From the NCBI GenBank assembly GCA_024704765.1, contig JAKMXF010000066.1:310001-374000 (forward strand): a stretch of 64,000 bases of DNA. Reading direction: 5' to 3'. Every line of letters begins with the position of its first letter. The stretch's first letter is position 1. Origin of the DNA: Oopsacas minuta (lineage: Eukaryota; Animalia; Porifera). The translations under genes were made by a program, and so were the position numbers. The notes beneath the pieces were generated by a model. It worked only from the letters and a program-made list of their open reading frames with translations. It did not search any database and had not been told where the DNA came from. Shown here piece by piece: positions 4,174 through 63,645 of this stretch.

Positions 4174-5307
4174 TCAAAATATCTGTAAACAGTTTTCATC
4201 TTTCTCGCATACAACTATAATCCCTCCCGTGGCATCTATTGCTATACCAAATGGATAAGAGAATTCTCCTACTTCCTGACCCTCCTTTCCAATCACATGT
4301 ATCTGTTCTCCCTCCTGATTAAACACATATACACAGTGACTGTGATAATCACTTAGAATAATATTAAACATTCTATCTACATCGAAATAATAAGAACTCT
4401 CAATTTGCTTGCCATCACCTCGTGATATGAGTCTGTTCAGTAGAGTATGATCTGAATTAAACACGAACATACACAAATCGCTACAATCTAACACAAACAC
4501 CTTGTTTCGTTTAGTTTTGACGTCACGTGGTGATTTAAACAAGCCTTCACCAAAAGTTGAATGGAAAACAAGGTATTGTGTAAATACCTGTACTCTATGG
4601 TTATACCTGTCACAAATATAAATATTATTTGTTTGGGAAAATGTTGTTATGCCTAGAGGAGAATTGAACTGTCCTTCTCCATTTCCTTTACGACCAACAT
4701 TATCAATGAATTTCCCTTCTAAGTTATATGCAGTAAAATAATGTCCTTCATTTTGTGTGACATATACTCTATCTTGTCCAATGCAAATACCTCTAGGCAA
4801 ATTCATTTGATTGCTGAACATGAACAGGTATATGAGACTACGCGTGAATACTTGTACTCTGTCGTTATCCCTATCTACTACATATATATTACCAGTCTTT
4901 CGATGCACAGCTAAGCATCGGGGTGAGTTAAATTCACCAGAACGCTTTGAGGTAGAATTCTTGCAGCTGTAAACAATTGGAACCTGTTTAGACTTATAAT
5001 CAGGAATAATAGGTTTTGCCTGTGATACATGAGACGGTTTCGGCAGACAAACTTTAATAGAACCTAAATTTGTTATTTTACTTTCAAATAATGGATCAAA
5101 TGCAAATTCGATTGACTGCTCAATTTCTTTGTTAGATTTATCAATAAAATAATTCTTGTATACAGATTCTATTTCTTCGAGACGGGAGAGAAGCATGTTC
5201 TCCCTCTCTATGAGAGCTTTGTGTGAACATTGGAAGCTGTATTGGATACGTTTTCGTGTTTGTTCTACTTCATTTGTGAAAGTTGTTTTCAACTCAATAC
5301 TAGCCAT
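4174..5307 (-). CDS. Intronless coiled-coil + NHL-repeat beta-propeller protein (TRIM-NHL-like, no RING or B-box)
   Basis: 377-aa ORF. NHL repeats FNSPRCLAV...YVVDRDNDRVQVF, FNSPLGIT...YICDRYNHRVQVF and FSYPFGIAID. The helical N-terminus has no Cys/His zinc-ligand pattern. Confidence 0.9.
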   Translation of the reverse strand: MASIELKTTFTNEVEQTRKRIQYSFQCSHKALIERENMLLSRLEEIESVYKNYFIDKSNKEIEQSIEFAFDPLFESKITNLGSIKVCLPKPSHVSQAKPIIPDYKSKQVPIVYSCKNSTSKRSGEFNSPRCLAVHRKTGNIYVVDRDNDRVQVFTRSLIYLFMFSNQMNLPRGICIGQDRVYVTQNEGHYFTAYNLEGKFIDNVGRKGNGEGQFNSPLGITTFSQTNNIYICDRYNHRVQVFTQYLVFHSTFGEGLFKSPRDVKTKRNKVFVLDCSDLCMFVFNSDHTLLNRLISRGDGKQIESSYYFDVDRMFNIILSDYHSHCVYVFNQEGEQIHVIGKEGQEVGEFSYPFGIAIDATGGIIVVCEKDENCLQIF

Positions 5308-5858
5308 TGCGTAATATTAATTCGGTGTAATTATAAATTAGTTGAAAACCAATTTAGTGAACTCAATAGATTCCAAAGATCAGTTAGAAATAATTCCTGA
5401 TAATAATGAATACGCCCTTGAGGGAAATAAGATCCAACTCTAAAGAAGGACAATATATTAGGCTAACTACCAGAATACTACATATAAAGGAAATTACAGC
5501 CACTGTCTGTATAACTACGTATACTAGTAAAAATGAATTCATTCATCTAGGCTGTATTTTCGTCCGGTCTATGACATTGCATCAAACCACCTTGACTTAA
5601 ACACATATACGTACAAATCTTTTATTGTAACAATTGATTAATAAGAGGGCAATTCCGAGTTTAAATCGTTAATTCTTGCAAAAATTGTAAGCAAATGATT
5701 AATGGGAACATAATTAGGTCCCTGGTAGACCCATTTTCCCCAATTTATATACTAAGTAGGATGTTTTAGGCACGTCGCAGATAGTAGGTATACACAACGT
5801 TGTGTGTCACCTTAGTAAGATAAACTTTAATGTCATATTTATACATAGAATAGAAATA

Positions 5859-6308
5859 ATGGGAGCAAGTCAAAGCGCAGGGACTAGTTCCACACCAACT
5901 TCAGGAAGCTCAAATTTGGAAACATCGCAATATACACGTGGAGACATACTCTACAGATATTTAGGTGGCATTGCTGGATTGACATTTTTGTATCATTATG
6001 GTGTGTATCTAGGTAAAAATGAAGTAATTCATTTTACACAGGGTAATAATAATGAAGGTTTGGTAGAGAGGGTCAGTCTCGAAGTATTTGCTAATGGGAA
6101 AGAGGTACGGGTTGAAACAGATTTTGGCCCATATAATGGCAGGAGATGTTCAGGCAGTGCAACTGCGGAAAAAGCCTCAAATATTTTCTATGAAGATGAC
6201 CCAGATTGGATAATATATGATAGGAATAACAGAAATTGCGAACATTTTACATCATATTGCGCAACTGGTGTAAAATACTCTAAACAAGCAAGAACGACGA
6301 CAAATTAA
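5859..6308 (+). CDS. LRAT/HRASLS (PLAAT)-family protein, catalytic residues intact, predicted N-myristoylated
   Basis: The ATG at 5859 gives MGASQS (MGxxxS). Motifs RGDILYR, YHYGVYLG, VIHFT and RNCEHFTSYC are present. Intronless. Confidence 0.88.
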   Translation: MGASQSAGTSSTPTSGSSNLETSQYTRGDILYRYLGGIAGLTFLYHYGVYLGKNEVIHFTQGNNNEGLVERVSLEVFANGKEVRVETDFGPYNGRRCSGSATAEKASNIFYEDDPDWIIYDRNNRNCEHFTSYCATGVKYSKQARTTTN

Positions 6309-24558: not shown

Positions 24559-27500
24559 ATGGCGAACAAAAAAATTAATGCTATTGCGTCGCTGCAGAAT
24601 GGAAGTTTGGATAAAGAACTTTGTCGATTAGACGCCAACCAAGCTAGTAAAATTCTCAACCAAAACTCACCGAATCATTTCGGTAGAACGGTACTACATT
24701 TGGCATGTGAACACGGCCAATACGAAGCAGTTAAATGTTGTCTAGAATTCGGAGCAAGGCCGAATAATACATCTACCTCAGCTGATCTACGAAAAAGTCC
24801 TTTACATGTGTTAATACAAAAACTACCTCCAAATACTGTCGAAATAACCAAGTTGCTTCTGGCTTATCGAGCTGATCCTAAAATAGTAGATTCATCAAAG
24901 AATACTCCGCTTGACTATGCTCATCAAAAGAATCATAAACAACTCATTCAATTGCTTTCAAAGGCTACATCTATTTATCAGTCAGCCTCTGGTATAGCTA
25001 CTAGAGAAGCGCCGGTAATTCACAAAGAAATAGAAAATAAAGTTGAAGGATCGAACGAGAAAATTATGGAATTGTTATCAAAATGTTATTTAAAGACTCT
25101 CTCAACTTTCGATTACAATAACTGGTCGCTGATTAATCGTGCTATCGTAAATTCTAACTTCAAATTAGCTGAATCCCTTGTCGAACATACTCTTGAAATC
25201 CCATCCACTAAAAACCCATCAAATTTCTCTCCACTCCATCTACTAACAATTTTCAAGTGCACAACTCTATTTAAAAATATAATAACAAAGTTTCCTAGGC
25301 TACTTCTGAGTAGAGATAATGACAAGAATACTCCATTACATTTGGCTTGTCGTAACGGCGTTTTTGAGTTAGTTTGCCTCATGCTGCCTGACAACAGACC
25401 ACTACAGTACGTAGATGTAAATGCCACAAACATGCGAGGCACGACTCCATTACACTACGCAGCGAGAGAGGGACATATATGTATAACAGAGTATCTATTG
25501 CAGTGTACGAAAACTAATTGTATTGACAGTACAAAACAAACATTCTTATTGAAGGCTATTCTGTCAGAACGAATAGACCTGATTCACACGTTACTATCAA
25601 ATCATTCACATGTAGTCGGTCAGCTCATTAATTACCAGGACAATGAGGGTAGGACCTTTCTACAACATATAGTCTCTAAAGGTCTTCACAACATAGTCAG
25701 GCAAATTCTCAAGCTAAACCCATCAGTAACTACTGTTGGTTTACTGACACTACAAGGTTATAAGAAATACAAATCGACGTACGCAGAATTTGAATTCTCA
25801 TTAGATGAAGAGATAGATGGTATCGATGAGTCTTTGCCGCCAATCATGCCAAACGACTCAGTACAAATTTCTCAATTAAGACGCACTCCTAGTAATCCTT
25901 TGAAAAGTAGCAATAATTTGAATTCACTGGACACTAGTATTGATTTCTACCCTAGTTCGCAGAGAAACAGTTTTAACACGAGCACTAGTGGTAGTTACCC
26001 AAAATGCGGAAGTAGTTTGGAATCAAAAAATTCTGATAATGTGTCTGCTAATGTTAACGTGGGTAAACAATCCTATCCAACTGATATACCTCAAGAACAT
26101 TCCCGTAACGTGTCTAAATTCCAAAAGTCTTCTAATTTCATCCTCAACAAATCTACTAATGTAACGGTGCTTATAGAATCACTGTTGTTGGATGATTTAA
26201 GTAGCTTCCAACTAATAATCGATTATATCCTTGAAAAGAATATTCCTATATCAGCATTGCCAGATTTCCAAAGTGCGGTGTGTTTAGCAATTCGTATAAA
26301 GAAATGGAGAGCAGTTGAAATTCTTCTAAAACTAACTTACAATGAGAAAATAGAGTATGAAGTAATTTGGAACAGGCTATACCTCACAAACGAAGCTCTG
26401 AACGAAGTAATCCAAGATATTACATCATTCAAATTTCTCACTAGTACAGACATGGTATTTCAAAACCTGATGGTATTAGATATACACAATAATGAATTGA
26501 CTGAGATTCCGAGTTTCATAGTTCAAATGAAAGAGCTTAGAAGACTATCTCTTGTTAATAACAAAATAGAAAATATTTCTCACGAAATATTTTCAATGAA
26601 AGAATTGAGAGAACTTAACTTATCAGGAAATTCGGTAAAATTTATACATCATCTAGCGAATGAACCTCTAATCAGTTTATTAAAATCAAAACTTGATAAA
26701 TTAGAATTAGAAAACTGCGGACTTGAACAATTCCCACCAGTTATAGAAGAACTCTACAAGCTACATGATTTGAATTTATCGCAAAATAATATTAATTCAA
26801 TTCCGTGTTACATTTGGAAACATAAAGGAATACGAAGACTGAATTTATCCCGTAACAAACTGACCCACCTTACTACTAAGTTGCTACGACCTAATGCTAT
26901 AGTACGGAGTAGCAATAATATAGTAGGAGAAGTAAGGATGAGAGCACCGAGAAGATTCTCTACATATTACGATAAGAGGGGAAGTAGAGAGAGATTTCAA
27001 ACACTCCCAATCACCTCAGATTCTATACCAGTTAGAAGTGTGCAGAGAGCTTCATTTGAACACAGTATCATACCTGGACTACAGTTTAATGTACAGCTAA
27101 ATAATGACCTATCTGAGCTGAATTTATCTTACAATGAATTTGCTTATTTCCCAACAGACATGAGTGGACTTACTCCCACACTTAAGAAACTTAATATGTC
27201 TTACAACAAGATACAAACTATCTACTTAAGTCTGATTCCTTACACGCTGATCGAGTTGAATCTGGATGGGAATTTGATTGATACATTTTCTTGCGACGAT
27301 CCATACTCTAGATCAAAAGGCATTGCTGAGGGAACATCTACATTATGTAGTGAAGAACATGACGCACTTAACTGGTTAAAGAATCTATCCATTAATGACA
27401 ATAAACTGAAGGAATTCCCACTGTTAGTGCACTACAGCGAAAATGAAGGTTGTAGCAATATCATCAGGCAACATAATATGGAAAAAAGGTTAAGATTCCC

Positions 27501-30500
27501 AGTTCTAGAAGTTTTGAGTATTGTAAATAACGTAATAACATTGTTGACACCTGAAATTCAATACCAGGCTTCTATACAAGAAATATATCTAGACGGAAAT
27601 GCAGAATTAGCCAAATTACCATACGAAATTGGATATCTAAAATGCTTCAATAGACTACAAATTATTTCAGTTGAGAATTGTCCAAAAATTGGCAACATTC
27701 CACCACACATCTACAATCATGGAAATATCAATACACCACTGTTAATGCCTTATTTCAGAGCACAACTGAAAGGGAGTGTCCAGAATAACTTAGTCAAGTT
27801 GATGGTTATTGGTTCTTTCAACCAAGGAAAAACTAGTTTATTGAGGAGATTGAAAGGATTGGGTTTGACAGAGCGTAACCCAACCAAAGGAGTGGAGATA
27901 GATTCTTGGAAATGCGATTTCGGGAGGGCGAAATCAATAACATTTGTGACATGGGATTTTGCAGGTCAAGAAGAGTATTATGCTACGCATCAATGCTTCC
28001 TTAGCACAGGTGCCCTGTATATACTTTGTTTCTCATTGGAAACATTCACTGAAGATGCAAAGAGCATGCAAACAATGACAGAATGGCTGCAGTCCATTGA
28101 ACTACGTGCTCCCCGTTCACCTGTGATAATCGTAGGCACACATTTGGATAAAGTGAGTGAAAATGTTGCCCTAGTCATTAAGGAAACTTTACAAGAGAAA
28201 TTCGTAACTGAAGGAGCAAGCAGAATAGAACAACTCCCTCATGTAATTGATGTTATGCTAGTGTGTTGTATTCCTGAAAAAAGTTTTTTCTCCAAATTGA
28301 ACAAGAAAATGGATCAATTGAAAGATAGAATATTAGATGTAGTAGGACATCTCTCTATGCACTACAATCGTATACGACAGACTATATCTTATTTATACAA
28401 ACGTGATGCAGATTCTAAATCACCGACTCTACTTTTGAATCAACAAACTCCAAAAGATTATGAAAATCTTCGTGAAAAATTGTTCAAGGTGAGTTCTACA
28501 CTTCTTGTAGAGGCAAAACCGCCAATACTTAAAGATTCAGAATTGAAAAGTCACGCTGAACACATAATAGATAATCCTGACGATCTATTCGATGCAGTCG
28601 AGCATCTACACATGCAAGGAAGTATCTTACACTTCAATACTCCCCTATTAAAAGATGTTTACTTCTTAGATCCAAATTGGCTATGCAAACAAATGGCTAG
28701 AGTTATAGGTGCTCACACAGACACTAACAATTCCAATGGACTCGTTTCGTTAGTTGATTTGGAAAGTAGTTTAAAAGATATTTCACAATTCTGGAATAAG
28801 TTTGTGAGATTGTTAGAGCAATTCCAGATTATGTTAAGGTTCTCAGAGGAAGAAGTACTCATTCCCTCACAATTACCAGTCGAACCGATTAATCTTGTTG
28901 GTTTATACAAGATTTTCACTGAAAACTTATACCCTGATCATAAAGACAAATATTTCGTACGTATCTGGCCGCTGGTAAATGTACCACATGGGTTCTGGCC
29001 CAGGCTTTTATGTCGTGTAGCTCAAGATCCAGTGATAATGTCATTAGTCAGCAAGAAATCTCATGCCACAATATCTATTATGGGCTCGCTGAAGGAAAGA
29101 AAGGAAGAAATAAAACGAAAACGAATTATCTCTGATGCGAATTTACCAACATTTGATTCAGATATAAACTGGAATTTTTGGAGAAGTGGCGTTCAGCTTG
29201 TTGATAAGCATGGAGAAATTCAGTTTGAAATTATAGAACTGTCACAAGATAATCCTGAAATAGTGGAAGAGGATAATACACCAGATTGTTATATAGATCA
29301 GCATAGATTTTATATAGAGAAGAAATTTAGAGTTCTTTCAGTTGTTCATGTACAAAACGATGAACTCGCTACTGATTGTCAAATTTTCGTACGAATAACA
29401 CAACACATAAATTCCTTATTCGAAGCTTGGTTTCCAGGTATCCTTACTGACTATCAAGTCCCTAGTTACTATCCTTGCCCTCGTTGCTTCTATCAAGACA
29501 CAAAACAATCTGTACCGCATATACAAGATCAAGGATACAGCGGGACGTTCATTAAATTCGGGCAAACAATTTGGAGTACTTTCACAGAAGAACACTGCTT
29601 CAGGAGATCTGGAGAGAATTCCCCTGTAAAATGTCATTGGCATGGAAATATAGACATAAGCAGAATAGCTCCTGATGTCAAGCTATTGGATGTAGGACCA
29701 GATCGTGTATTAGATATGAACACAATCCGTCTAGGCTCACAATTGGGGGCTGGCACTTATGGAGTTGTGTACAAGGGTGAAATATGGGATCACTATGATA
29801 ATGACTCGATACCTTGTGCTATAAAGCTATTCGTAGGCAACACTTTCGGGAGAAGTTATGACCATATCCTTGAGCATATGTCAGAAGAAGATCAATGGAA
29901 TTCATATATAGAATTAAGGAAAGAGCTCTCACCCATGGTTAACCTAACACATCCTAATCTATCTCTACTCTTGGGTGTAACAATGTCACCTCTGCAGATT
30001 GTAATGGGGCTAGCACGAAAAGGTTCCTTACTTACAATGATTAACAAATACAGTGAGAAGAAAGCTATTTTCCATCCAAAGATAGCAGCTAGCTCTATTT
30101 TACAGATAGCTTCCGGACTGAACTATCTGCATTCTAACAATCTAGTACATCTTGACTTGAAAGCAGCTAATATATTAGTCTGGGATTTTCCAGAGCCAGA
30201 TGAACAAACAGCTGACTCAAAAGTACTTCTGAAACTTGCAGACTACGGCACAGTGTTACACTGCGATACATTGGGGGTACGTATGTCGAATTTGGTAGGA
30301 ACTCCTGGTTATATTGCCCCAGAAGTTGTGCTGTTCTCTGGGAAGCAGAGCTTCACATCTAAGGCAGATGTTTTCTCATTCGCAATGGTGTTGTATGAGA
30401 TTTTAAGCTACAGACCTCCTTTTGTTAATTTCGATAGCGAGCATGATCAGAAATGGGCGCCAGCACAAGGACGTAGACCCCTTTTACGCGCGGAAGAAAA

Positions 30501-32199
30501 ATACAGTCCTTGTTTGTTCCAAGACCTCATGACTGCTTGTTGGACAGCTGATCCTGACGACCGTCCTACCATGGAGGAATGTGAAAATATAGCCAGTAAT
30601 CCTCTATTTAGCGAAATTCGTAGTATAATGTCCTTTGAGAAAATGGTTAGATTCGCTTCCCATGCTGTTATCACCAACACCCTGAGTGAGACACGAATTC
30701 CTGGGGATTCTATGGATTTACAGCCGTTAGGCATGGAAGGAGGACTCACCGATTCCATGAAGAGGTATGGTAGTATGTCAATGGAGCCGAGAAAGCCAAG
30801 AATCAAATCTGACATAATTGACTTTGGAAACTTACTCACAGGGGAGAATACACAGATTTGGCTAGGTGCATTTAATGATCCGTATAGGAATAAAGTTGCA
30901 ATAGTACAGTATCTGCATGGGCAATTAGGAAGTCGTGTATGGTTTGTAGATGTTTTACCATCAGGGGGAGATGCCTACATAACAGTGCTTACTTCAGTTA
31001 ACAAGCAAGTATGGCTAGGTACTAATGAGGGAAAGATAATTGTGATTGATGGAACTTGCTTTAAGAAACTACCAGTTGAATATTCTAATTTAAATACAAA
31101 TGAAATACACGCAATTAAGCACGTTGAAATAATGAAGAAAGTGTTTATATCATTTCGCAGTAATGACGTTGCAATTCTAGAAGATAAATTGGAAGTGGAA
31201 CTATCAGGAAACTACAAATTTATTATAACAGTTTTCATTACAACAGATAATCCTATATTCACATTCCACCCTGTACAGAGGCATACTAACAGCTGGGAAG
31301 TATGGGGAACTAAGGATGGGTGTACCATAGAAGTTTTCCCGCAGTTACCCAATGGTAAACTCGGTCAGAACTTTAGCAAGTCATTATCAGTAGATCCTAC
31401 TGTTAAGTATCAGCGATTTCATTGCATCGCTTCCTGTTTTCAGGAGGATATACCCGAACAGAAAATAGATGGATATGCAGTAGTATGGATATCTGAATGG
31501 CAGAGAGCTACAGCTTATGTAATGGGGGTTTTGAGTAGGTCATTGAGAGCTGGTGTGCCAATACCTAAGGATTTGAATAATCCTGATGCGATTAAAGAGG
31601 TAAGATAATACAGTCCAACAGAACTCCTGTTATATCGAATACGGATACATTATAGAAATACCCGCTTATATCCAAGTCTGAAATTGCACAATTATAGTAT
31701 CGAAGTAACATAAATTACACCGGTTAATCAAAACCTGCTTATTTCGAAGTAATTATCGCGGTCACTTGAGCTTGAGTTTTGATTTGTTAATATATTCGTA
31801 CTAATTAGTGTGGAACAAATTGTTGCTTATATAGAATGAGCAAAGCCAAATGAATCTCTTTCGAATATGTACAATGTTATCCATGGTTTATTGTTGTGTA
31901 TCTGTGTTTAGATTTCTTCTATGTATAATAAAGGCAGGACAATCTACTTGGGAGTGAGTGATGGACACGTGTATAAATTTGATATGGTATCAAGACAATT
32001 GCTAAATTCCTATGCAATTCATCAAACTAAAGTCAGGAAAATAATTCCATTACCTGCACTAGCGAATGGTAGTGTTTGTGCTGAGAAATGCTGTGAAGAT
32101 CAGCAAATAGTTATAACAGTAGGTAACGGGTTCTATCAACACATTCCTTCTGTAAAGAAAAGCAGAGATTTGTGTCTTGTTGCATTCAGTTTGTCTTAA
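24559..32199 (+). CDS. LRRK: LRRK1-like ROCO protein (ankyrin, LRR, Roc GTPase, COR, kinase, WD40-like tail); exons 24559-31599 and 31912-32199
   Basis: Ankyrin repeats GRTVLHLACEHG, NTPLHLACRNG, TTPLHYAAREG. LRRs such as LRRLSLVNNKI. Roc motifs GSFNQGKTSL, PTKG, WDFAGQEEYY, GTHLD. Kinase motifs LGAGTYG, AIK, HLDLKAANIL, DYG, GTPGYIAPE. Donor GAG|gtaag at 31599/31600 and acceptor tttag|ATT at 31911/31912 are in phase. Confidence 0.95.
31611..31780. mobile_element. Family-1 MITE filling most of the single LRRK intron (right end degenerate)
   Basis: TA|CAGTC...AACTCCTGTTATATCGAA...TCGAAGTAATTATCGCGGTCACTTGAGCTT. Confidence 0.65.
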
Positions 32200-50600: not shown

Positions 50601-53600
50601 ACTTATCACATGCACAGAGGATCTCATGGTTTTAATCTAATGGGTCAGTGATAAATAATTTCCATAGACATACAGTCAACTCCCCCAATATCGAACACGG
50701 ATATAGCGAAGTCTGACATTGTACAAATATGGTCCCAAACTGTCAATATAGCAAAATAACAAATTCATCGGGTTATATCGAACTTCGCTTATATCAAAGT
50801 AATTATTGCAGTCCCTTGCGAGCTTCAATATAACAGGAGTTGACTGTAATCCTTCACAACTAAACTACGAATATTACAGATATATCAAACACGTCAGCAA
50901 ATACGTACACATAATCTGAGGACAATCGTTAATACTATATATAATAATTCAAACACTGATGTTACAGTAACAAATATCGCAGTTATCGACAGTAAATCGA
51001 AATATAAAGGAAAATATAAACTCAATTTAGGTATAGTGGTATACTAGGCTTATACAGATGTAACATAATACTCAGAATGAGAGGTTAAATACACAAAAAA
51101 ATTACAGAAGAATTAAATCAGTCAGTGAAGCATGCAAACAATTCTACTCACTATATTTGTATCTCTGCTGGTACAAAGGGGATATAGCGACGACACTCCC
51201 CCTCTAGGACAAGGGTATTTCATTCCAAAGCATAACTTGCTAGGGGAGCAACTATTAGGCGGGCAAACTCTACTCGACATGACAGCTGATTGTTGGAATT
51301 GTGTCAGAGACGAAGGTACATATCAGAAAACGGATGTGTACACAAATACGGAGAGATTTTACAGGTCTCTCACCTCGACTACTTCCCTCTCTCCCAAGCT
51401 AGAAACCGACTTCACGCTAGGAGCTACGCTAGACATAACCTCAAACGGGATTAGCGGGGGTGTGAGAAATCTCACTGGAGTATCTTTGAACGATTATACA
51501 ACTTCTTTAATTTGTTTTCTAAAAAGTGTGTGTTTGAGCAAAAACAAATTAAACATTGATTTCCAGAAGGATTTTGAAGCATTGAATCCTAGCATTAAGG
51601 AGCCTTGGTTGGAGTCTAATTGGGTAGATTACGAAACATTCTATAACAAATACGGATCTCACTTTATAACAGAAGTAGCATATGGAGCAAGATTTTATGA
51701 GCACGCATTTTCAGACGCAAGAATGAGCTATACTTCGCGAAATTTGACAGTTAGAGCATGCGCTGCATTAGCCGGGCCAGCTGGGATTGGTATTCTGGAG
51801 ATAGAAGCCTGTGAGGGCATAAATAAACAGGAAATAGACTCAGTGTCTTCTCTTGCTATCTACACACTTCTAGTTATAAGAGGGGGTACAGCTAAAACCA
51901 GGGCTGAGCTTTATAAGAACAGAACTGTTGCAGGAATAGCAAAGTTTATGAGTGAAGCAAATGCAACCGAAATGCCAATAAAGTACAATTTCATGCCAAT
52001 TTGGTCGCTCCTACAGTTGAGGTATCTAGACACAGAACACTACTCAAAGGCTAGGAACCTTGCTGCGTATTATCTGGGATTTGGTAATTATGGATGTGAA
52101 TACCAGCCTGTAATTAATACAAGCAAGTTCAAGGTGGAATATTACCAAAGGTTCGAATACGCTCCGACATCCACTGATAGCATTCCAACATTCCAATGCG
52201 TAATAGCGCCTCAGGGCTGTCACGCTGATACCGACTGTCACAAGCATGACATTATACGCTGCTCATGTCACGGAGATTCCTGTATCAGACATTTCCCTAA
52301 CACTCTGGATACTAGTGTTATCAAGAAAGTAGCTCGACCTAACTATGACATAAAATGGGGAGCATACGGTTGTGGACAACACCTCCTAAAGTGTAGTTGT
52401 GACAATATGGACTGGGGATATTCTACAGTATGGCAGCAGGATAAAGACACTGATTATCCTACCATTAAGTCATAAGGGAAACAACTATATATGATTTATG
52501 CATGATTTCTGGTAAAAGACATTTCATGGAGTAATTTGCCTGTAGTTTGTAGGTACGTATATTGTACACGTAGTTATAAATTATTCAAAATCATAAGACA
52601 CGAGATATTGATGATGGACTATTCTTACCTCTAGGGGGAGGTCCTCGGTAGGATGAACCTTGTCCTTGATAGTTTCCTACAATGAATTCACGTATTAATA
52701 CGGTATAAGCACGTGTACGTATTTCAATTAAGAAACATATCTACACAATTCTACAGTCAACGTAATTTAGTATAGGTCAATTTGTTAGGTAGATAGACTG
52801 TTTGTGGAATTACGTGCAATTGTTGTGATAGTATATCGTGGAACCTCTGAATAACGAACAATTTGTGGGTTGTAAATATAAATTATCGAAGTGTTCGATT
52901 CAAGATGCCAAATCGTATATATTTGCGACAAATCAGATTATTCCAATCGTGTAATAATTGAAAAATCTCACAAATATAAAATAAATTTTCATCAACAAAC
53001 ATGAATGGAGCGCGGCGAGAAACTAAGAAATTAATAATATTAGACTAGACCATTATAAACATAGAGAATTACGCTTATCAATAGTAAGTCTATCGTCTAT
53101 GCGGTTGGAACGCCATAAAATTTATCAAAAAGTATGAAACTGTAACCGCAAGATTGTTCAAATACCAAACGACAATTATCTATTTTTAATACAAATGAAA
53201 TACAACACAGATATGGTAGTGTAATATTACTATATACCTCTAGATCCATAATGATCCATTCCACCACCGCCCATACCAGTAGAATAGTCCTCTCTAGGAT
53301 AGTTAGGTGCACCGTAGTGTTGCTGGTCCTGATAAAAATAATTAAACATGAATATATAAGAGATATACTAACCAACCATTCCTCTAGGTGGAGGAGGCCC
53401 ATCATAGGAGGAGGTACCGCCCATACCCATAGATGGTTGTCTCCCTTGTCCCTCGTATGAGTCTGTAGGAGGAGTAGGGTCTCCATAGCTGGGAGGAGGC
53501 TGAGGGGGTCCGTACTGTTGTCCGGGGGCGGAGCCGTAAGAAGGTCCTCCCCTGTACTCAGGTTGCCCTGTACCACCACTTGCTCCACTGTAGCTAGTAT

Positions 53601-56600: not shown

Positions 56601-59600
56601 CGTCAAAAAGTAATTAAATACTCCTAGAGTATAAATAACGTGTAGAACACTGGTTATGTTTGTATTTGTAGATACATATCCATATAGTTAGTATTTGGAT
56701 ATTGTAGAATTGTGTTACATTTTTGAAATAAAATATTTCAATTTGATCTATTAAACTAGACTACTAGTCGAATTGTTTTGACTAAAAATGGTCCTCTATA
56801 TGCGAATTAGATGTTATAAACCATGGATGGTAGATTTCGTGGTTTTAAGTTATATAGAAATTCCTCCCTAATCTCGCATCAAAAATCCTTGACAACATCC
56901 AAGCATGTATAGTAACTAATCCGGGAAAATACCCAAACCAAAAACAGAGGAGTGCCTTATACAATAGAACAACATTCAAGCAGATATACGAAATCCACCA
57001 TCCATGGTTAATAACCATGTAGAGGAGGAAACAATTTTTGTCATATTATATAACAAATAATAAAATCATATGTATTGTACCATGGATATAACTGATATCT
57101 GAATACTACATTTATTACTGACTAGAGAAAATATTCAAAAGTTACCAAGCGCAATCCATGAGAACTCATAAAACCTAAAATATATTAACTGTGGATAAGT
57201 GTGTAAACCAATTTCTTAATTCAACTTTAAATGAACGTCAAAAGATGCGAAAATATGATTAATCCTATGATAATTATAAATATTTGTAAATGTAGTGCTG
57301 GAAAAGATACATATGGACAAGTTGTAAATTCCTGGTTTTCTGCTACTGTAAGTGACAAAGTGAATAATAAATAATTTCAAAAAGTTTTCCATCAATTTTA
57401 TAGAAAATGTCAATCACAATTACTCCAAACATAAGAACATGGGGAAGACAATGTATAGATGAACCGGCAATTACAAAGGACACGAACTCATAATTATATA
57501 TTACCATAGAAATATACGATGGCATAATTAATCCCATTTCTCGTTATAATATCTATAATTAGATGATATATTACTTAATCTGATATAAATAGAGATGCTA
57601 AGTATACATACAATACGATACACGTGTTGCTCTGCTTTATGGAAATGGAAACTAATATGATTAAAGGTAACTTGGCAGATTAACGTGAGTATTAATAGAA
57701 TAACACCTTACTAGATTAAACATATATGAAGCGGCACAATATCTGAAGAGATGGCTGTGTGCACCGTGCACGAGTATATATATATAAGAAAAGAATGGAG
57801 ATTGACATAAAGGCAAAAGTCAGAGATGGGAATAATGAACAGTAAGTTCAGTCGAATATCACCTGAAACAGTGGAGAAAGGAGATATCGTAGTAAACAAG
57901 GTTAAATATCCTCGTCAATACGCAGTGTATATCGGAGAAGGGAAAGTTATTGAGTATATACACAAAGGCAATAGTGTGGGAGAGATTATAACAAATAACT
58001 TGAAGAGTTTCCACAAGAACGGAGTATTAAGAATTCGTGGAATTAGAATATTTAGACTTGAATACCCAGAGAGAGTAGACAGAGCTTACAATCTATTAAT
58101 CAATCCAACTCAGGAATGGAACATGTATAATCATAGGTTTATGAACAGTGAAACATTTGTACGATATTGTACTACAGGGATGTTGAATGATAGAACAATA
58201 CCTATGAGGAGGAGAATAGTTTGGAGTATAGCAGATAAGATTAATAATAGTATTAATGGGAGAGCGAGGAAAAGAATGGAGATTTGATTGTTTGACAATA
58301 ATTATGTATTCTGTAATGTAAAAAAATAATTTAATATGTAAATAAGTATACATGTGGGCAATTCTATTTTACTGATATAGGAACGTTCTTTCGTGTATAA
58401 ATTTGTTTTCATAGGAATGGGGACAACAACAATGCGTAAATACCAAGGGTCTAGTTTTAACAGGATTAGTTTTATGGAAATACTAAAGTCAAATACTTGA
58501 CAATTGTCAAGTTATAGAGCATTATAGTATCTTTATTAGCCCTGCTGGTAAGTTGTAATTGAGTAGACAACTCTGATACCAAGGATGTTGTAAATCTATC
58601 AATCGTAATGAAATCAAGACGGAATGTTTCTATTAACTATCCCTGGTCTATCTGTTACAACTTAAGCGATAAGAACACACACATATGGCACAAGGTGAGC
58701 GGTCCTACCGTCCTGGATCTCAAATATATTATATTATATTATACTATTCGGAATAGGGCAGTATTAAAAAGTCACTTACATATCGTTTCAAAACGACAAA
58801 TAAAATATCTCAATACGTGGGTATTATATCCAAAGCTACCTGATTCCAATAACATTATGTTTTGTTGACCTAACCTGCTTGTGACCAAACGTGGTATTAA
58901 CCAAATACGACATAGAATAATCAATGGAAAGAGACAGTGCATACTCAAATCTACTCACCGAGAAGAAGAAGGAGGAGGTACAAAGATTTTCAGATAAATA
59001 AATCTGATATATACGTAACAATATTCCAAATTTAATAAAACAGGTCAATTGATACAATAGCTTACTTGGGTTGGCCCCATGTTCATAAGACTGAGCTCCT
59101 CCTGTCGTGTAAGGTCTGGATGCAGTATTACTCCCGTAGTAAGGGGAACTAACAGCTGTAGTAGTGGTTATGGTTGTGTCTCCATACGAGTAGCTGCTAT
59201 AGCTACCAGTCCCTGGTCGCTAAATTACAATACAAGTACACTGTTGTATAAACTGTATATACTACCTGAATATTTGAACATTGTCACATAAATGGATTAC
59301 GATCGTTCTGTATAATGAAGATATCAAAAATGACTTGATTTACTCCAGAAACAATGGAATTTGTAAATGCCTAACCAAAAGATGCGCTAATGACGTCAGA
59401 TTACCACACATATATGCTACATACATACGAGTTACGTTGACAATACATAACATAGAATGAAGCAATATGTAAGATACCTGTGTAGCATATGAATCAGTGG
59501 TAGGCTGATATTGAGGAACTGAAGTAGGAGCAGTGGTAGAACGAGCAGTAGACTGAGTGTAGTTATAGTACTGATAAGGATCAGAAGTGTAGCTAGAGAT

Positions 59601-60469: not shown

Positions 60470-61508
60470 CTCTCAATGATGAAATTATATAAGTCACAAT
60501 ATGCTAATTATAGAATTAAAATATAGTCAACTACATACGGATTATAATAGCTGAGGTTGCATAACAATACCAATGTTTTCAGTGTAGTCTATTGGCTCAT
60601 AACAACCATGATTAGTGTCAACCTGAGGAGAAAACTACACAATTCACGGAGTATGTAAATTTGTAAATAAATTATATTCTATATATAGTATACAAAGGTG
60701 ATAATTATGTATTCAAATATTAAATCGTGAGTAGAATAATTTTACCCATAACTCTTATGGGTAAACCATTTGGTTTACTTACAAGTGTAATGGGTAAAAT
60801 TATCGCACAGTGCGGAGAAGATTACTTGGATAAAGACGAATAATCTCAATCCAGTGAATTCACAATTCTTATAAGAGCCAGTCACACAGTCAGGACTCTA
60901 TGAATATACAGTAGTGCTTTGAATTGATATTGTTACCTTATAGCTTAGTATCATAGTCAGTCTACCCGGGCACTGATTAGTACAAACTAGACAAATTGCT
61001 ACAAATTTTGCATACATACATTTGGAGCCTAGATTGCCTTAGAGTAGCCAATTCAATACCTACGTCTCCTTCGATACGATTGCTCAAGTTGAACTGATCA
61101 ATTCTTATTATACAACTAACTGGTGTAAATCCAAACGAGTGATTTAATTCTGTTAGTTTATTAAATGACTGATTATTGAATGTCAGCTTCTGATATGAAA
61201 AGGAGTGACATGTGATCTGTTCAGTGTTATTTCAATGAAATCGAAGCCATTTTCAAATTGTTTCTACTGGGGTACTAACTAGTACTCATTGGACGAATTG
61301 CTACATTTTGCATCCTGCGATAATATGGTTGCCAAACAGCTCAATTCCTTTTATCCAACTTCAACAACTAATCTGTATGGACATGACTTTAGTGAGTTTA
61401 GATTCCTTGAATTTTATAGTTTATACGTAATTTATTTGAATGTTTTAATCCCAAATTGGATAATTAACTTTAATAATCACACATCTGAATTATCAAATAG
61501 CCATTAGA

Positions 61509-63072
61509 ATGGCATCAAACATACCATCCAATGAGATAGAACAGTTCGATGATATCTCTAAACAAATCCAAGAGAAATTCGACCTTCTCATCCGTCGATT
61601 GATCGTAAGGAGAGATGGTCTCTTAGACAGACTATTACAACTCAAGGAGGATTATATCAACAAAGAAACAACTCGAATTTCATCCATAAAAGATCTAGAA
61701 AGAATACGAAAAGAAATAGAAGAAATGAGGAGTAGAGTAAATACCAATAATCAGATCCATGAACAAGCTGCTCAGTTATACGATAAGGGTCTTGAGGATC
61801 TCAGAGTACCAACAAATCTACAAATCCCTGTATTCCATTATCCATCATTACAACAAATCAAATCACTAATTGATCAATTCGGGGAGATAGAGTTGGAGGT
61901 ACCAAACCAGACTGAAAAGGAACCTAAGGTAACACCTCAAGCAAATCTGTGCTGGAAGAAGTCATTTCCATCATTAGTGGGGGGAAACAGCTGGAAGATG
62001 GGGAATTCCCTTTCCGACTACGATACCCAGATGGAGAGCTGCATAAATGATGTTCCCAGGTGAATATAAATATGATGTATAATAATCCCTAATTGAATTT
62101 TATTTTAGTGGTAACATAGAAATATTCATCAAAACTCTGACTGGTAAGATAATCACTCTTTATGTTAAGCCTACTGACACTATTGAAGTATTACGTGCTA
62201 ACATCCGAGACAAGGAAGGGATCCCTTCCAACCAGCGGCTCATATTTGCTGGGGAACAGCTAAAAGATGAGAGAACCCTATCCGACTACAATATCAAGAA
62301 CGGGAGTACACTCCATTTGCATGTAGTATTCCGGCTTAAGAATGGCATACAAATATTCATCAATACTCTGACTGGTAAGACAATAACTCTTTATGTTAAG
62401 CCTAGTGACACCATTGAAAACGTATGTTATCAAATTCAGGACAGGGAAGGGATCCCTCCCGACCAGCAACGCCTCATATTTAGAGGGAAACAGCTGGAAG
62501 ATTGGAGAACACTATCCGACTACAATATCAATAACGGGAGTACACTCCATTTAGTACTCCGGCCTAAGAATGCCATGGAAATATTCATCAAAACTCTGAC
62601 TGGTAGGACTATCACCCTTGATGTTGGGCTTAGTGACACCATTGAAAACGTGCGTTATAAGATTCAGGACAAGGAAGGGATCCCTCCCGACCAGCAACGC
62701 CTCATATTTGAAGGGAAACAGCTGGAAGATTGGAGAACACTATCCGACTACAATATCAATAACGGGAGTACACTCCATTTAGTACTCCGGCCTAAGAATG
62801 CCATGGAAATATTCATCAAAACTCTGACTGGTAGGACTATCACCCTTGATGTTGGGCTTAGTGACACCATTGAAAACGTGCGTTATAAGATTCAGGACAA
62901 GGAAGGGATCCCTCCCGACCAGCAACGCCTCATATTTGAAGGGAAACAGCTGGAAGATTGGAGAACACTATCCTACTACAATATCAATAACGGGAGTACA
63001 CTCCATTTAGAACTCCGGCTTAAGAATGGAGAAATAATTAGAAGATGGATGAACACTATTCTACCTAAATAG
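61509..63072 (+). CDS. Coiled-coil protein fused to four tandem non-canonical ubiquitin repeats; predicted exons 61509-62059 and 62109-63072
   Basis: Donor CCCAG|gtgaat and acceptor tattttag|TGGTAAC bound a 49-nt phase-2 intron joining ORF 61509 in frame to an ATG-less open frame. Ubiquitin units start at 62116, 62347, 62575 and 62803 (IFIKTLTG...EGIP...RLIF.G.QL.D.RTLS.YNI..GSTLHL). Confidence 0.75.
62116..63030 (+). repeat. Tandem array of four ~228-bp ubiquitin-coding units
   Basis: Unit 1 is 231 bp and units 2-4 are 228 bp. Units 3 and 4 are nearly identical in nucleotide sequence. Confidence 0.95.
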
Positions 63073-63213: not shown

Positions 63214-63479
63214 GGGCGGATACGCACAGGTTTAAGAGAATCACGGTGATAAATGAGTAAATGTGTTGGATACCCGTTGGGTGTGTTTCTCCCCTTTGCT
63301 ATTCTATTGGACATCAAGTGCCACTATTTGACACCAACCAAATTTGTCTGACCAATAGGCTACTAATATATGTGATTATGACATCTCAGGGCACCGCCCT
63401 CCTCTGTATGTAACTCTGATTGATTATATATCAGCCATAATTGTCATTGGGGTCACAGCTAAAGTAACTAACCATTAGA

Positions 63480-63572
63480 ATGGCATCAAAAATGGGATAG
63501 AACAGTTCGATGATATCTCCTAACAAATCGACGAGAAATTCGACCTTCTCATCTGCCGATTGATCTTAAGGA
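63480..63572 (+). pseudogene. Frameshifted, truncated copy of the 5' end of the 61509 coiled-coil gene
   Basis: CCATTAGAATGGCATCAAA...GATAGAACAGTTCGATGATATCTC...GAGAAATTCGACCTTCTCATC matches 61501-61610, but with a 10-nt deletion and an AAA>TAA change. Confidence 0.85.
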
Positions 63573-63645
63573 TACATGCTCTCTTAAGCCCGCCATACAT
63601 ACATTTTTCTATCGAGATGTTGATTGGTGCTGCTATAATTATACA

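Follow-up and report, generated by a model that had tools for sequence, protein, structure and literature searches.

A coiled-coil gene of the glass sponge Oopsacas minuta with four ubiquitin-like units that lack Gly-Gly

What can a tandem array of ubiquitin units be for if none of the units ends in Gly-Gly? The question is raised by a 64,000-nt stretch of the Oopsacas minuta genome (contig C66:310001-374000; this whole stretch is called the window, and coordinates without a contig name are positions in it), near the end of which four ubiquitin repeats follow one another. A first-pass annotation, made from the sequence alone, had taken the repeats for a candidate uncleavable mimic of a linear, Met1-linked ubiquitin chain, or a decoy. 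The analysis described here places them in LOD99_14744 (gene A), a real protein-coding gene of O. minuta that is annotated as a 504-aa hypothetical protein (database protein P0222). Gene A is a ubiquitin-domain protein of new architecture, in which the ubiquitin units are integral and without Gly-Gly; both gene A and its neighboring paralog, LOD99_14745, were already annotated as hypothetical. The assembly analyzed has 61.46 Mb in 365 contigs, and the published genome was described as 365 scaffolds of ~61 Mb in total with 36% G+C (PMC10280926). The window is AT-rich (~35% G+C), with the compact genes of a eukaryote.

The gene and its ubiquitin units

The reading frame of the array opens only within an intron, and there is no ATG in it before the third unit. 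Upstream, an open reading frame at 61509-62063 meets a GT donor at 62060, an AG lies at 62108, and the frames of the two exons join across the 49-nt intron so defined (62060-62108, GTGAAT...TTTTAG, with a CTAAT branch-like motif). The array is in frame with the upstream exon across this GT..AG intron; it is exon 2 of a larger gene and not a free-standing gene. The Met1-like chain of the first-pass annotation proved to be the C-terminal part of a 504-aa coiled-coil protein. Exon 1 (61509-62059) and exon 2 (62109-63072) were joined in silico for comparison with the database entry; their translation was identical to P0222, which was used in the later analyses. If the intron is retained, the frame stops at 62061-62063.

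All features of gene A are on the forward strand. An intron in the 5' leader (61392-61500; 109 nt skipped, GT..AG) ends 8 nt before the start codon. The first part of exon 1 (61509-61928) encodes an N-terminal coiled-coil domain of 140 aa, which is common to a group of coiled-coil+NHL genes described below, and the second part (61929-62059) encodes a linker that includes the degenerate C-terminal half of a fifth ubiquitin unit (~61975-62059). The DNA of this fifth-unit remnant aligns to the GKQLED...LHLVLR part of a unit, and part of it is translated in a frame shifted from that of the paralog. The linker differs from the paralog by indels of 8, 6, and 1 nt; these sum to 15, so the frame of exon 1 is restored. 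Exon 2 encodes the linker residues S, G, and N, the four units, and a 13-aa C-terminal tail with its stop codon (63031-63072, the stop at 63070-63072).

Tandem Repeats Finder reported a period of 228 nt with 4.0 copies and 90% matches at 62115-63028, and the Pfam ubiquitin family (PF00240) matched four stretches with an E value of 4.7e-111. The units are arranged head to tail with a 76-aa period and without spacers. The reference for all comparisons was the canonical ubiquitin of O. minuta itself, taken from polyubiquitin loci on C33 and C133 with four units each; all eight of these units were identical in protein sequence and ended in LRLRGG. A canonical ubiquitin-L40 fusion was also present, on C324. 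The units of the array are not canonical ubiquitin, with 15-24 of 76 positions changed. The most diverged is unit 1 (62116-62346, 77 aa, ending FRLKNG), with 52 of 76 positions identical to ubiquitin; it lacks one codon at position 40 and has two extra codons after position 69. Unit 2 (62347-62574, ending LRPKNA), unit 3 (62575-62802, ending LRPKNA), and unit 4 (62803-63030, ending LRLKNG) have 76 aa each and are identical to ubiquitin at 60, 61, and 61 of 76 positions, respectively. Unit 4, which carries V70E and D58Y, differs from unit 3 at only 5 nucleotides.

Release by deubiquitinases and activation by E1 both need Gly75-Gly76. No unit of the array has this pair, and therefore none should be releasable by deubiquitinases or activated by E1. 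The loss of di-Gly from all four units, on which the first-pass annotation was built, was confirmed (the ends are KNG, KNA, KNA, and KNG, then the 13-aa tail), and its conclusion that the units can be neither released nor conjugated holds by established ubiquitin biochemistry. Alignment to the sponge's own ubiquitin also bore out the individual residues that it had named: every unit has N in place of K63; K27 is replaced by R in units 1, 3, and 4 and by C in unit 2; R has taken the place of K11 in units 3 and 4, and E that of K48 in unit 1; L8 and I44 are retained throughout, and V70 is retained in units 2 and 3, with the E of unit 4 and the two-residue insertion of unit 1 in its place in the others. 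Its more general statement that chain-forming lysines had been lost was correct only in part. K27 and K63 were lost systematically, but K6, K29, K33, and K48 are mostly present, and at K48, K29, and K6 ubiquitination of the units would still be possible.

Several other positions were also changed. All four units carry I instead of V5, E16 has become Y in units 1 and 2 and D in units 3 and 4, and G53 has become E in unit 1 and W in the other three. Three units have E at Q2, three have R or E at A46, a neighbor of I44, and both Q62 and E64 are substituted as well. H68 is retained in 4 of 4 units, and F4 and T14 are retained in all of them.

The paralog LOD99_14745 (P0121, KAI6659069.1, 417 aa) is encoded in tandem downstream of gene A, at C66:374513-375842. 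Its promoter region and coiled coil are nearly identical to those of gene A, the sequence further upstream differing before 61413, and it has a 76-nt intron at the equal place. It contains three units, ending RGT, KNA, and RSE, and Gly-Gly is therefore absent from all seven units of the two genes. At least three codon routes from GGN GGN account for this loss: AAT GSN, GGT ACC, and TCA GAG.

The seven units were used to examine how the array has evolved. A Fitch count gave ~108 substitutions and zero stops, compared with 3.75 stops expected if ~3.5% of random changes would create one (P ~0.02), and all three of the indels inside units were multiples of three. Of the 14 positions that we take to be the hydrophobic core of ubiquitin, only 2 vary, both V to I or L, compared with 39 of the 62 positions elsewhere (Fisher p = 0.002). 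Outside the core, changes were counted in cells (one unit at one position), and since the units share ancestry the p-values are descriptive. In the tail (positions 73-76), 75% of cells were changed versus 24% of other non-core cells, and for the seven lysines the figures were 45% versus 25%, with K to R accounting for 9 of the 22 changed lysine cells. The D58 patch was changed less (7% versus 29%). The I44 patch, which the first-pass annotation had described as a kept receptor-binding surface, was also changed less (14% versus 28%), but over the seven units it is not statistically distinct (p = 0.13). I44 and H68 were kept in 7 of 7 units, K48 in 6 of 7, and K29 in 5 of 7. A concentration of changes in the surface altered in engineered ubiquitin variants was considered and not accepted, as the enrichment was weak over the seven units (32% versus 23% of cells, p = 0.04) and absent for the units of gene A alone. 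The comparison of nonsynonymous with synonymous substitution rates (dN/dS) against canonical polyubiquitin, suggested with the first-pass annotation, was uninformative owing to saturation at synonymous sites, which is already reached between the two canonical loci; among the units dN/dS was ~1.

The resulting picture is of a fold under constraint with surfaces changing fast. The absence of stops, the in-frame indels, and the spared core, set against a decayed remnant of a third copy next to gene A, argue against free decay.

Family, expression, and a second organism

The coiled-coil domain of exon 1 had at least 94 matches in the O. minuta genome, nearly all of them within 400-425-aa open frames in which NHL repeats come next, and only 82 relatives in a library of 1.84 billion representative proteins. 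One coiled-coil+NHL gene lies within the window, at 4174-5307 on the reverse strand, with Pfam matches to NHL only. Judged by these sequence matches, the family is large and lineage-specific. The coiled coil is common to the NHL family, and therefore gene A is a member of that family in which the NHL propeller was replaced by an array derived from polyubiquitin. Exon 1 gave no match to any Pfam family, neither a RING nor a B-box was found in gene A or in the paralogs examined, and P0222 begins directly with the coiled coil; gene A is not a TRIM protein, because it has neither RING nor B-box (TRIM definition in PMC3503706). The RING-less coiled-coil+NHL genes were often found in tandem clusters, some with broken copies, and one member had been automatically named 'Toll-interacting protein B-like'.

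The remnant of the third copy lies 400 nt downstream of gene A, between the two intact genes, and carries stops and deletions. A fragment of the start of its coiled coil (63466-63586, forward strand) has 82% DNA identity to 61495-61625 and an in-frame stop, and a single decayed stretch of ubiquitin, which closes with two stops, lies beyond the end of the window at C66:374130-374350. With a dead copy between intact genes, the cluster shows birth-and-death evolution. In a separate observation, six bases that differ between gene A and the paralog at 61704-61831, in the exon for the coiled coil, occurred in varying combinations in contigs of four sequencing runs; the mixed variants fit bubble-popping during contig building, gene conversion, or polymorphism.

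The four runs (X1-X4) came from one sample of one study, none was recorded as RNA, and they were compared with 61300-62346 as Logan contigs, which drop minor forms, so that intron retention in them is not proof. Gene A is transcribed. A contig of run X2 joins 61391 to 61501, skipping the 109 nt of the GT..AG leader intron, and the sequence to the left of this joint belongs to gene A alone, since the paralog differs there, before 61413. Another X2 contig ends in ...GTTGTTCCGAG followed directly by GGATAACATA, which is exon 1 of the paralog joined exactly to exon 2. This junction sequence is absent from the genome, and therefore X2 holds spliced RNA and a fusion mRNA of the paralog exists. No spliced joint at 62060-62108 was listed in the contigs of X1-X4.

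Two of the 82 coiled-coil relatives also carry ubiquitin: P0173 (207 aa) and P0162 (272 aa). They are encoded in tandem, adjoining a coiled-coil+NHL gene, on a 696-kb contig of another assembly (ENA ERZ25072740, ctg126364, L061:8409-12571). A RecQ-like gene of that contig is 59% identical to its best O. minuta match, so the organism is not O. minuta. The coiled coils of P0162 and P0173 are 43-45% identical to O. minuta NHL genes of 403 aa and 28% identical to gene A, and their ubiquitin parts are 67-68% identical to canonical ubiquitin compared with 51-58% to the units of gene A. Both proteins are without Gly-Gly, and the array of P0173 is interrupted at ubiquitin position 74 by an in-frame TGA, beyond which lies a second unit. 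We read these two proteins, from their sequences, as a separate fusion of like kind, with the same loss of Gly-Gly and with visible decay. Orthologs of P0162 and P0173 were looked for in the O. minuta genome, which has none; the coiled coils of the two proteins fall into a different subfamily. Near the fusion genes, that contig also has a gene with an IBR domain and genes with ankyrin repeats.

A word search with exon 2 was uninformative on orthologs: all 8000 of the 8000 scored candidates matched, at no more than 75% identity, and they were ordinary polyubiquitins. None of the matches listed in that search ended in KNG or KNA. Exact look-ups of P0222 and P0121 among assembled contigs gave no match, and records of the sponge's own genome are possibly outside that set.

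Predicted structure and possible roles

The structure of P0222 was predicted by AlphaFold2 with an alignment of family coiled coils and polyubiquitins. The model contained helices at residues 9-76, 81-97, and 112-124, followed by residues 131-182 with a predicted local distance difference test score (pLDDT) below 50, and then four beta-grasp domains with pLDDT of ~80-90; the 13-aa tail was again below 50. Together with the spared core, the four predicted beta-grasp domains support the view that the ubiquitin fold was kept. The predicted template modeling score (pTM) of the whole was 0.32, and because of this low score the arrangement of the domains is taken to be flexibly linked and not fixed. 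The best Foldseek match of the model was linear tetra-ubiquitin (7yui_A, E 1.3e-49, 74% identity), and the top matches in general were linear tetra-, tri-, and di-ubiquitin bound to HOIL-1L, optineurin, ABIN, and NEMO. The tandem domains of OASL (chicken, 7sbi) and ISG15 were far behind among the fold matches. On the inter-unit geometry relative to Met1-linked chains, proposed for examination with the first-pass annotation, the model has a linear chain as its best match and no fixed arrangement of the units. The idea that the changes at 2, 16, 53, 62-64, and 73-76 make the array a rigid rod was not supported, given a pTM this low with good pLDDT in the domains and a root-mean-square deviation of 10-17 Å from linear tetra-ubiquitin.

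When two copies of residues 1-140 were modeled, an antiparallel homodimer was predicted, with contacts between residues 24 and 35, 28 and 28, and 42 and 13. The interaction prediction score from aligned errors (ipSAE) was 0.56, as the median of three runs, compared with 0.01 for the best control; the runs agreed in at least 81% of contacts and had pLDDT of at least 67. Of 30 solved homodimers, 21 attained the mark set for ipSAE, and of 23 single chains none did; the corresponding counts for eukaryotes were 17 of 29 and 0 of 30. The model supports antiparallel pairing of two chains through the coiled coil. A link in sequence between this coiled coil and solved TRIM coiled coils was not accepted, as the profile search gave non-significant matches only (TRIM45, E 0.07, and Brat, E 0.24, both weak).

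Genes that might read or erase linear chains were also found. The OTULIN family (Peptidase_C101) was above the Pfam cut-off at four loci (C322:322486-323406, C354:334895-335828, C3:129041-130748, and C41:79114-80763), and the linear-chain-determining domain of HOIP was above it at one (C110:271153-271335). The presence of these OTULIN-like and HOIP-like genes makes it plausible that linear-chain machinery exists in O. minuta, and such machinery may be present in this glass sponge. Known readers of linear chains use an I44 patch on the distal unit (L8, I44, H68, V70) and an F4 patch on the proximal unit (Q2, F4, T14), and OTULIN needs E16 of the proximal unit (PMC5135002).

The best reading of these results, held with slightly less than even confidence, is that gene A may encode a dimeric, permanent polyubiquitin-like scaffold or decoy. 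Its ancestor would have been a member of the coiled-coil+NHL family in which part of a polyubiquitin gene took the place of the propeller. Two chains are predicted to pair in antiparallel orientation through the coiled coil, which would be followed by a disordered linker of ~50 residues and by four ubiquitin-like domains, predicted to fold independently and arranged head to tail as in a Met1-linked chain. With Gly75-Gly76 lost from every unit, the array would be neither trimmed by deubiquitinases nor conjugated, and the protein may serve as a multivalent platform that recruits, or competes for, readers of ubiquitin chains without a ligase; a precedent is the mimicry of polyubiquitin reported for the two ubiquitin-like domains of OASL (PMC6019448). 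A kept fold with fast-evolving surfaces fits a role in recognition or conflict, as for the parent family. A bolder version would be that a RING-less, TRIM-like family of this glass sponge replaced ligase-made chains by an encoded, unerasable linear polyubiquitin, the dimer displaying eight units that switch on or block readers in an early-animal immune or stress pathway without an E3, and that this arose more than once, in O. minuta and in the second organism; this is considered unlikely.

A number of results weigh against the scaffold or decoy reading. The pairwise dN/dS values among the seven units were 0.56-2.85, which is neutral or diversifying at the amino-acid level, and the shared ancestry of the units makes the p-values of the surface comparisons descriptive. 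Every contig that crosses 62060-62108, in all four runs and thus also in X2 with its spliced RNA, retains the intron of gene A; were the mRNA to retain it too, translation would end at 62063 and gene A would not yield the array. An ortholog of gene A in another named species was not found, and the family undergoes birth and death, as seen in the remnant here and in the interrupted array of P0173. On the side of the readers, a NEMO-type UBAN match, on C22, was only sub-threshold, and residues used in reading were altered, with E16 lost in all units, Q2 changed to E in three, A46 changed to R or E, and positions 73-76 changed; because of the changes at E16, A46, and Q2, canonical readers may bind the array differently.

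Gene A could instead be a young chimeric gene that is drifting, in which a polyubiquitin fragment came to lie behind a coiled-coil exon, its Gly-Gly decayed, and the array has no function. The array may then be carried in the transcript as an unspliced 3' stretch and be turning into a pseudogene like the adjoining remnant. The dN/dS of ~1 among units, the coding intron of gene A seen only unspliced, the dead copy between two intact genes, the TGA that cuts the array of P0173, and the lack of an ortholog in another named species all favor drift. It is nonetheless judged somewhat unlikely, because ~108 substitutions produced zero stops, every indel preserved the frame, the core was spared, two intact paralogs exist, the fusion splice of the paralog is present in RNA, and Gly-Gly was lost repeatedly and independently.

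The array might instead act as a built-in signal for degradation or delivery to the proteasome. Uncleavable ubiquitin fusions are substrates of ubiquitin-fusion degradation (UFD) via TRIP12 and HUWE1 (PMC3507821), and the units could likewise be extended by UFD ligases at K48 and K29, which are mostly kept among the seven units, or dock directly on proteasome receptors, with I44 and H68 kept in every unit; the protein and any cargo of its coiled coil would then be short-lived or delivered for degradation. The ubiquitin of a classic UFD substrate is N-terminal, however, while the array lies at the C-terminus, a degron would not need as many as four units, and the loss of K27 and K63 together with the frequent changes of K to R reads more like avoidance of ubiquitination, so that this role is thought quite unlikely. 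A trap for deubiquitinases, such as an OTULIN-like enzyme of the sponge or the enzymes of a parasite or virus, which would bind the chain and not cut it, seems very unlikely. The scissile Gly-Gly is absent from every unit, the linear topology matches Met1-linked chains, the genome has four OTULIN-like loci, the surfaces evolve fast, and ubiquitin variants engineered at 2-14, 42-49, and 62-76 are potent deubiquitinase inhibitors (PMC12155308), all as a trap would have it. Against this, E16 of the proximal unit is lost, the tail that enters the active-site cleft is changed at 3-4 of its 4 positions, and the enrichment of changes in the engineered-variant regions over the seven units is weak.

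If the scaffold or decoy reading is true, animals can encode directly a ubiquitin-chain signal that is normally written and erased by enzymes, for which previously only the two, much more diverged, domains of OASL had suggested an encoded form. The array would also be a natural reagent, a non-hydrolysable linear tetra-ubiquitin-like protein with variant surfaces, and would give a view of ubiquitin-chain reading in one of the earliest animal lineages. Should the array turn out not to be translated, or to be inert, what remains is a hypothetical chimeric gene that is already annotated. In either case the locus is an example of domain swapping, and of birth-and-death evolution, within a coiled-coil+NHL family that has at least 94 genes. 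No paper describing LOD99_14744, LOD99_14745, or an architecture of coiled coil and polyubiquitin-like array was found in the literature, and the O. minuta genome paper does not mention ubiquitin, NHL, or TRIM (PMC10280926).

Other genes and comparison with known systems

Several other ubiquitin-like genes were noticed in the genome. A ubiquitin-S27a fusion (L022, C66:935448-935660) seems to have a diverged ubiquitin-like part, ~38% identical to the query unit, that ends in LELSGG before the zinc ribbon of S27a. Three clustered genes (L018, L029, and L027, C110:180679-188186) each encode a diverged ubiquitin-like domain ending in QGG or KGG and, after it, a conserved C-terminal domain (...DPxWDYDFT...RGGxxYYRPCGWKR...), and two of the three have a Gly/Ala-rich hydrophobic N-terminal stretch. 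Proteins encoded at C19:16535-23026 (L026 and L030) and C110:570653-573874 (L028) consist of many strongly diverged ubiquitin-like domains in tandem, which share 33-43% identity with the query unit and none of which ends in Gly-Gly; the L028 protein has a cysteine-rich C-terminal part. Elsewhere in the window, three small intronless LRAT/NlpC-like open reading frames with the motif ...NCEHF..YC.TG lie on the forward strand at 31-393, 5802-6308, and 57826-58287, one of them with a weak Pfam match to LRAT (E 4e-4). A single-exon open reading frame of 2349 aa (24559-31608, forward strand) has ankyrin, leucine-rich-repeat, GTPase-like, and kinase-like parts and is ROCO/LRRK-like by eye, and a secreted-looking 447-aa protein with a MACPF/perforin domain (Pfam E 1.7e-9) is encoded at 51132-52475 on the forward strand.

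The architecture of gene A has partial counterparts in several known systems. Polyubiquitin precursors (UBB, UBC, UBI4, and the sponge's own loci on C33 and C133) share the spacerless units of 228 nt and a short C-terminal extension. However, their units are canonical, end in RGG, and are cut to monomers, whereas the array is without Gly-Gly and is fused to another domain. Gene A is not a polyubiquitin precursor, because its units lack Gly-Gly and are non-canonical. In the Met1-linked chains made by LUBAC, the complex that assembles linear ubiquitin chains, the C-terminus of each unit is joined by a peptide bond to residue 1 of the next, as in the array. Those chains are post-translational and erasable, while the array is encoded and has changes at 73-76, E16, Q2, Q62-E64, and G53 (PMC5135002), so that recognition by canonical readers is uncertain.

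The TRIM-NHL proteins (TRIM2, TRIM3, TRIM32, TRIM71, and Brat) resemble the parent family in having a coiled coil followed by NHL repeats, and TRIM coiled coils form antiparallel dimers of the kind predicted here. They differ from gene A in that its NHL domain has been replaced by the ubiquitin array. ISG15 and FAT10 also have tandem beta-grasp domains in one chain, but they finish with Gly-Gly and, unlike the non-conjugatable array, are conjugated to target proteins. The Ub-G76V reporters of the UFD pathway have ubiquitin fixed to a protein by a destroyed Gly-Gly site (PMC3507821), as in the array, but they are engineered and have a single N-terminal ubiquitin, whereas the array is natural, C-terminal, and made of four units. 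The tandem ubiquitin-like domains of OASL, reported to activate RIG-I through mimicry of polyubiquitin (PMC6019448), are likewise C-terminal in a larger protein and without a usable Gly-Gly. OASL has only two such units, ~29-30% identical to the array, behind an OAS-like N-terminal domain, whereas gene A has four units that are 68-80% identical to ubiquitin, derived from polyubiquitin, and placed behind a coiled coil.

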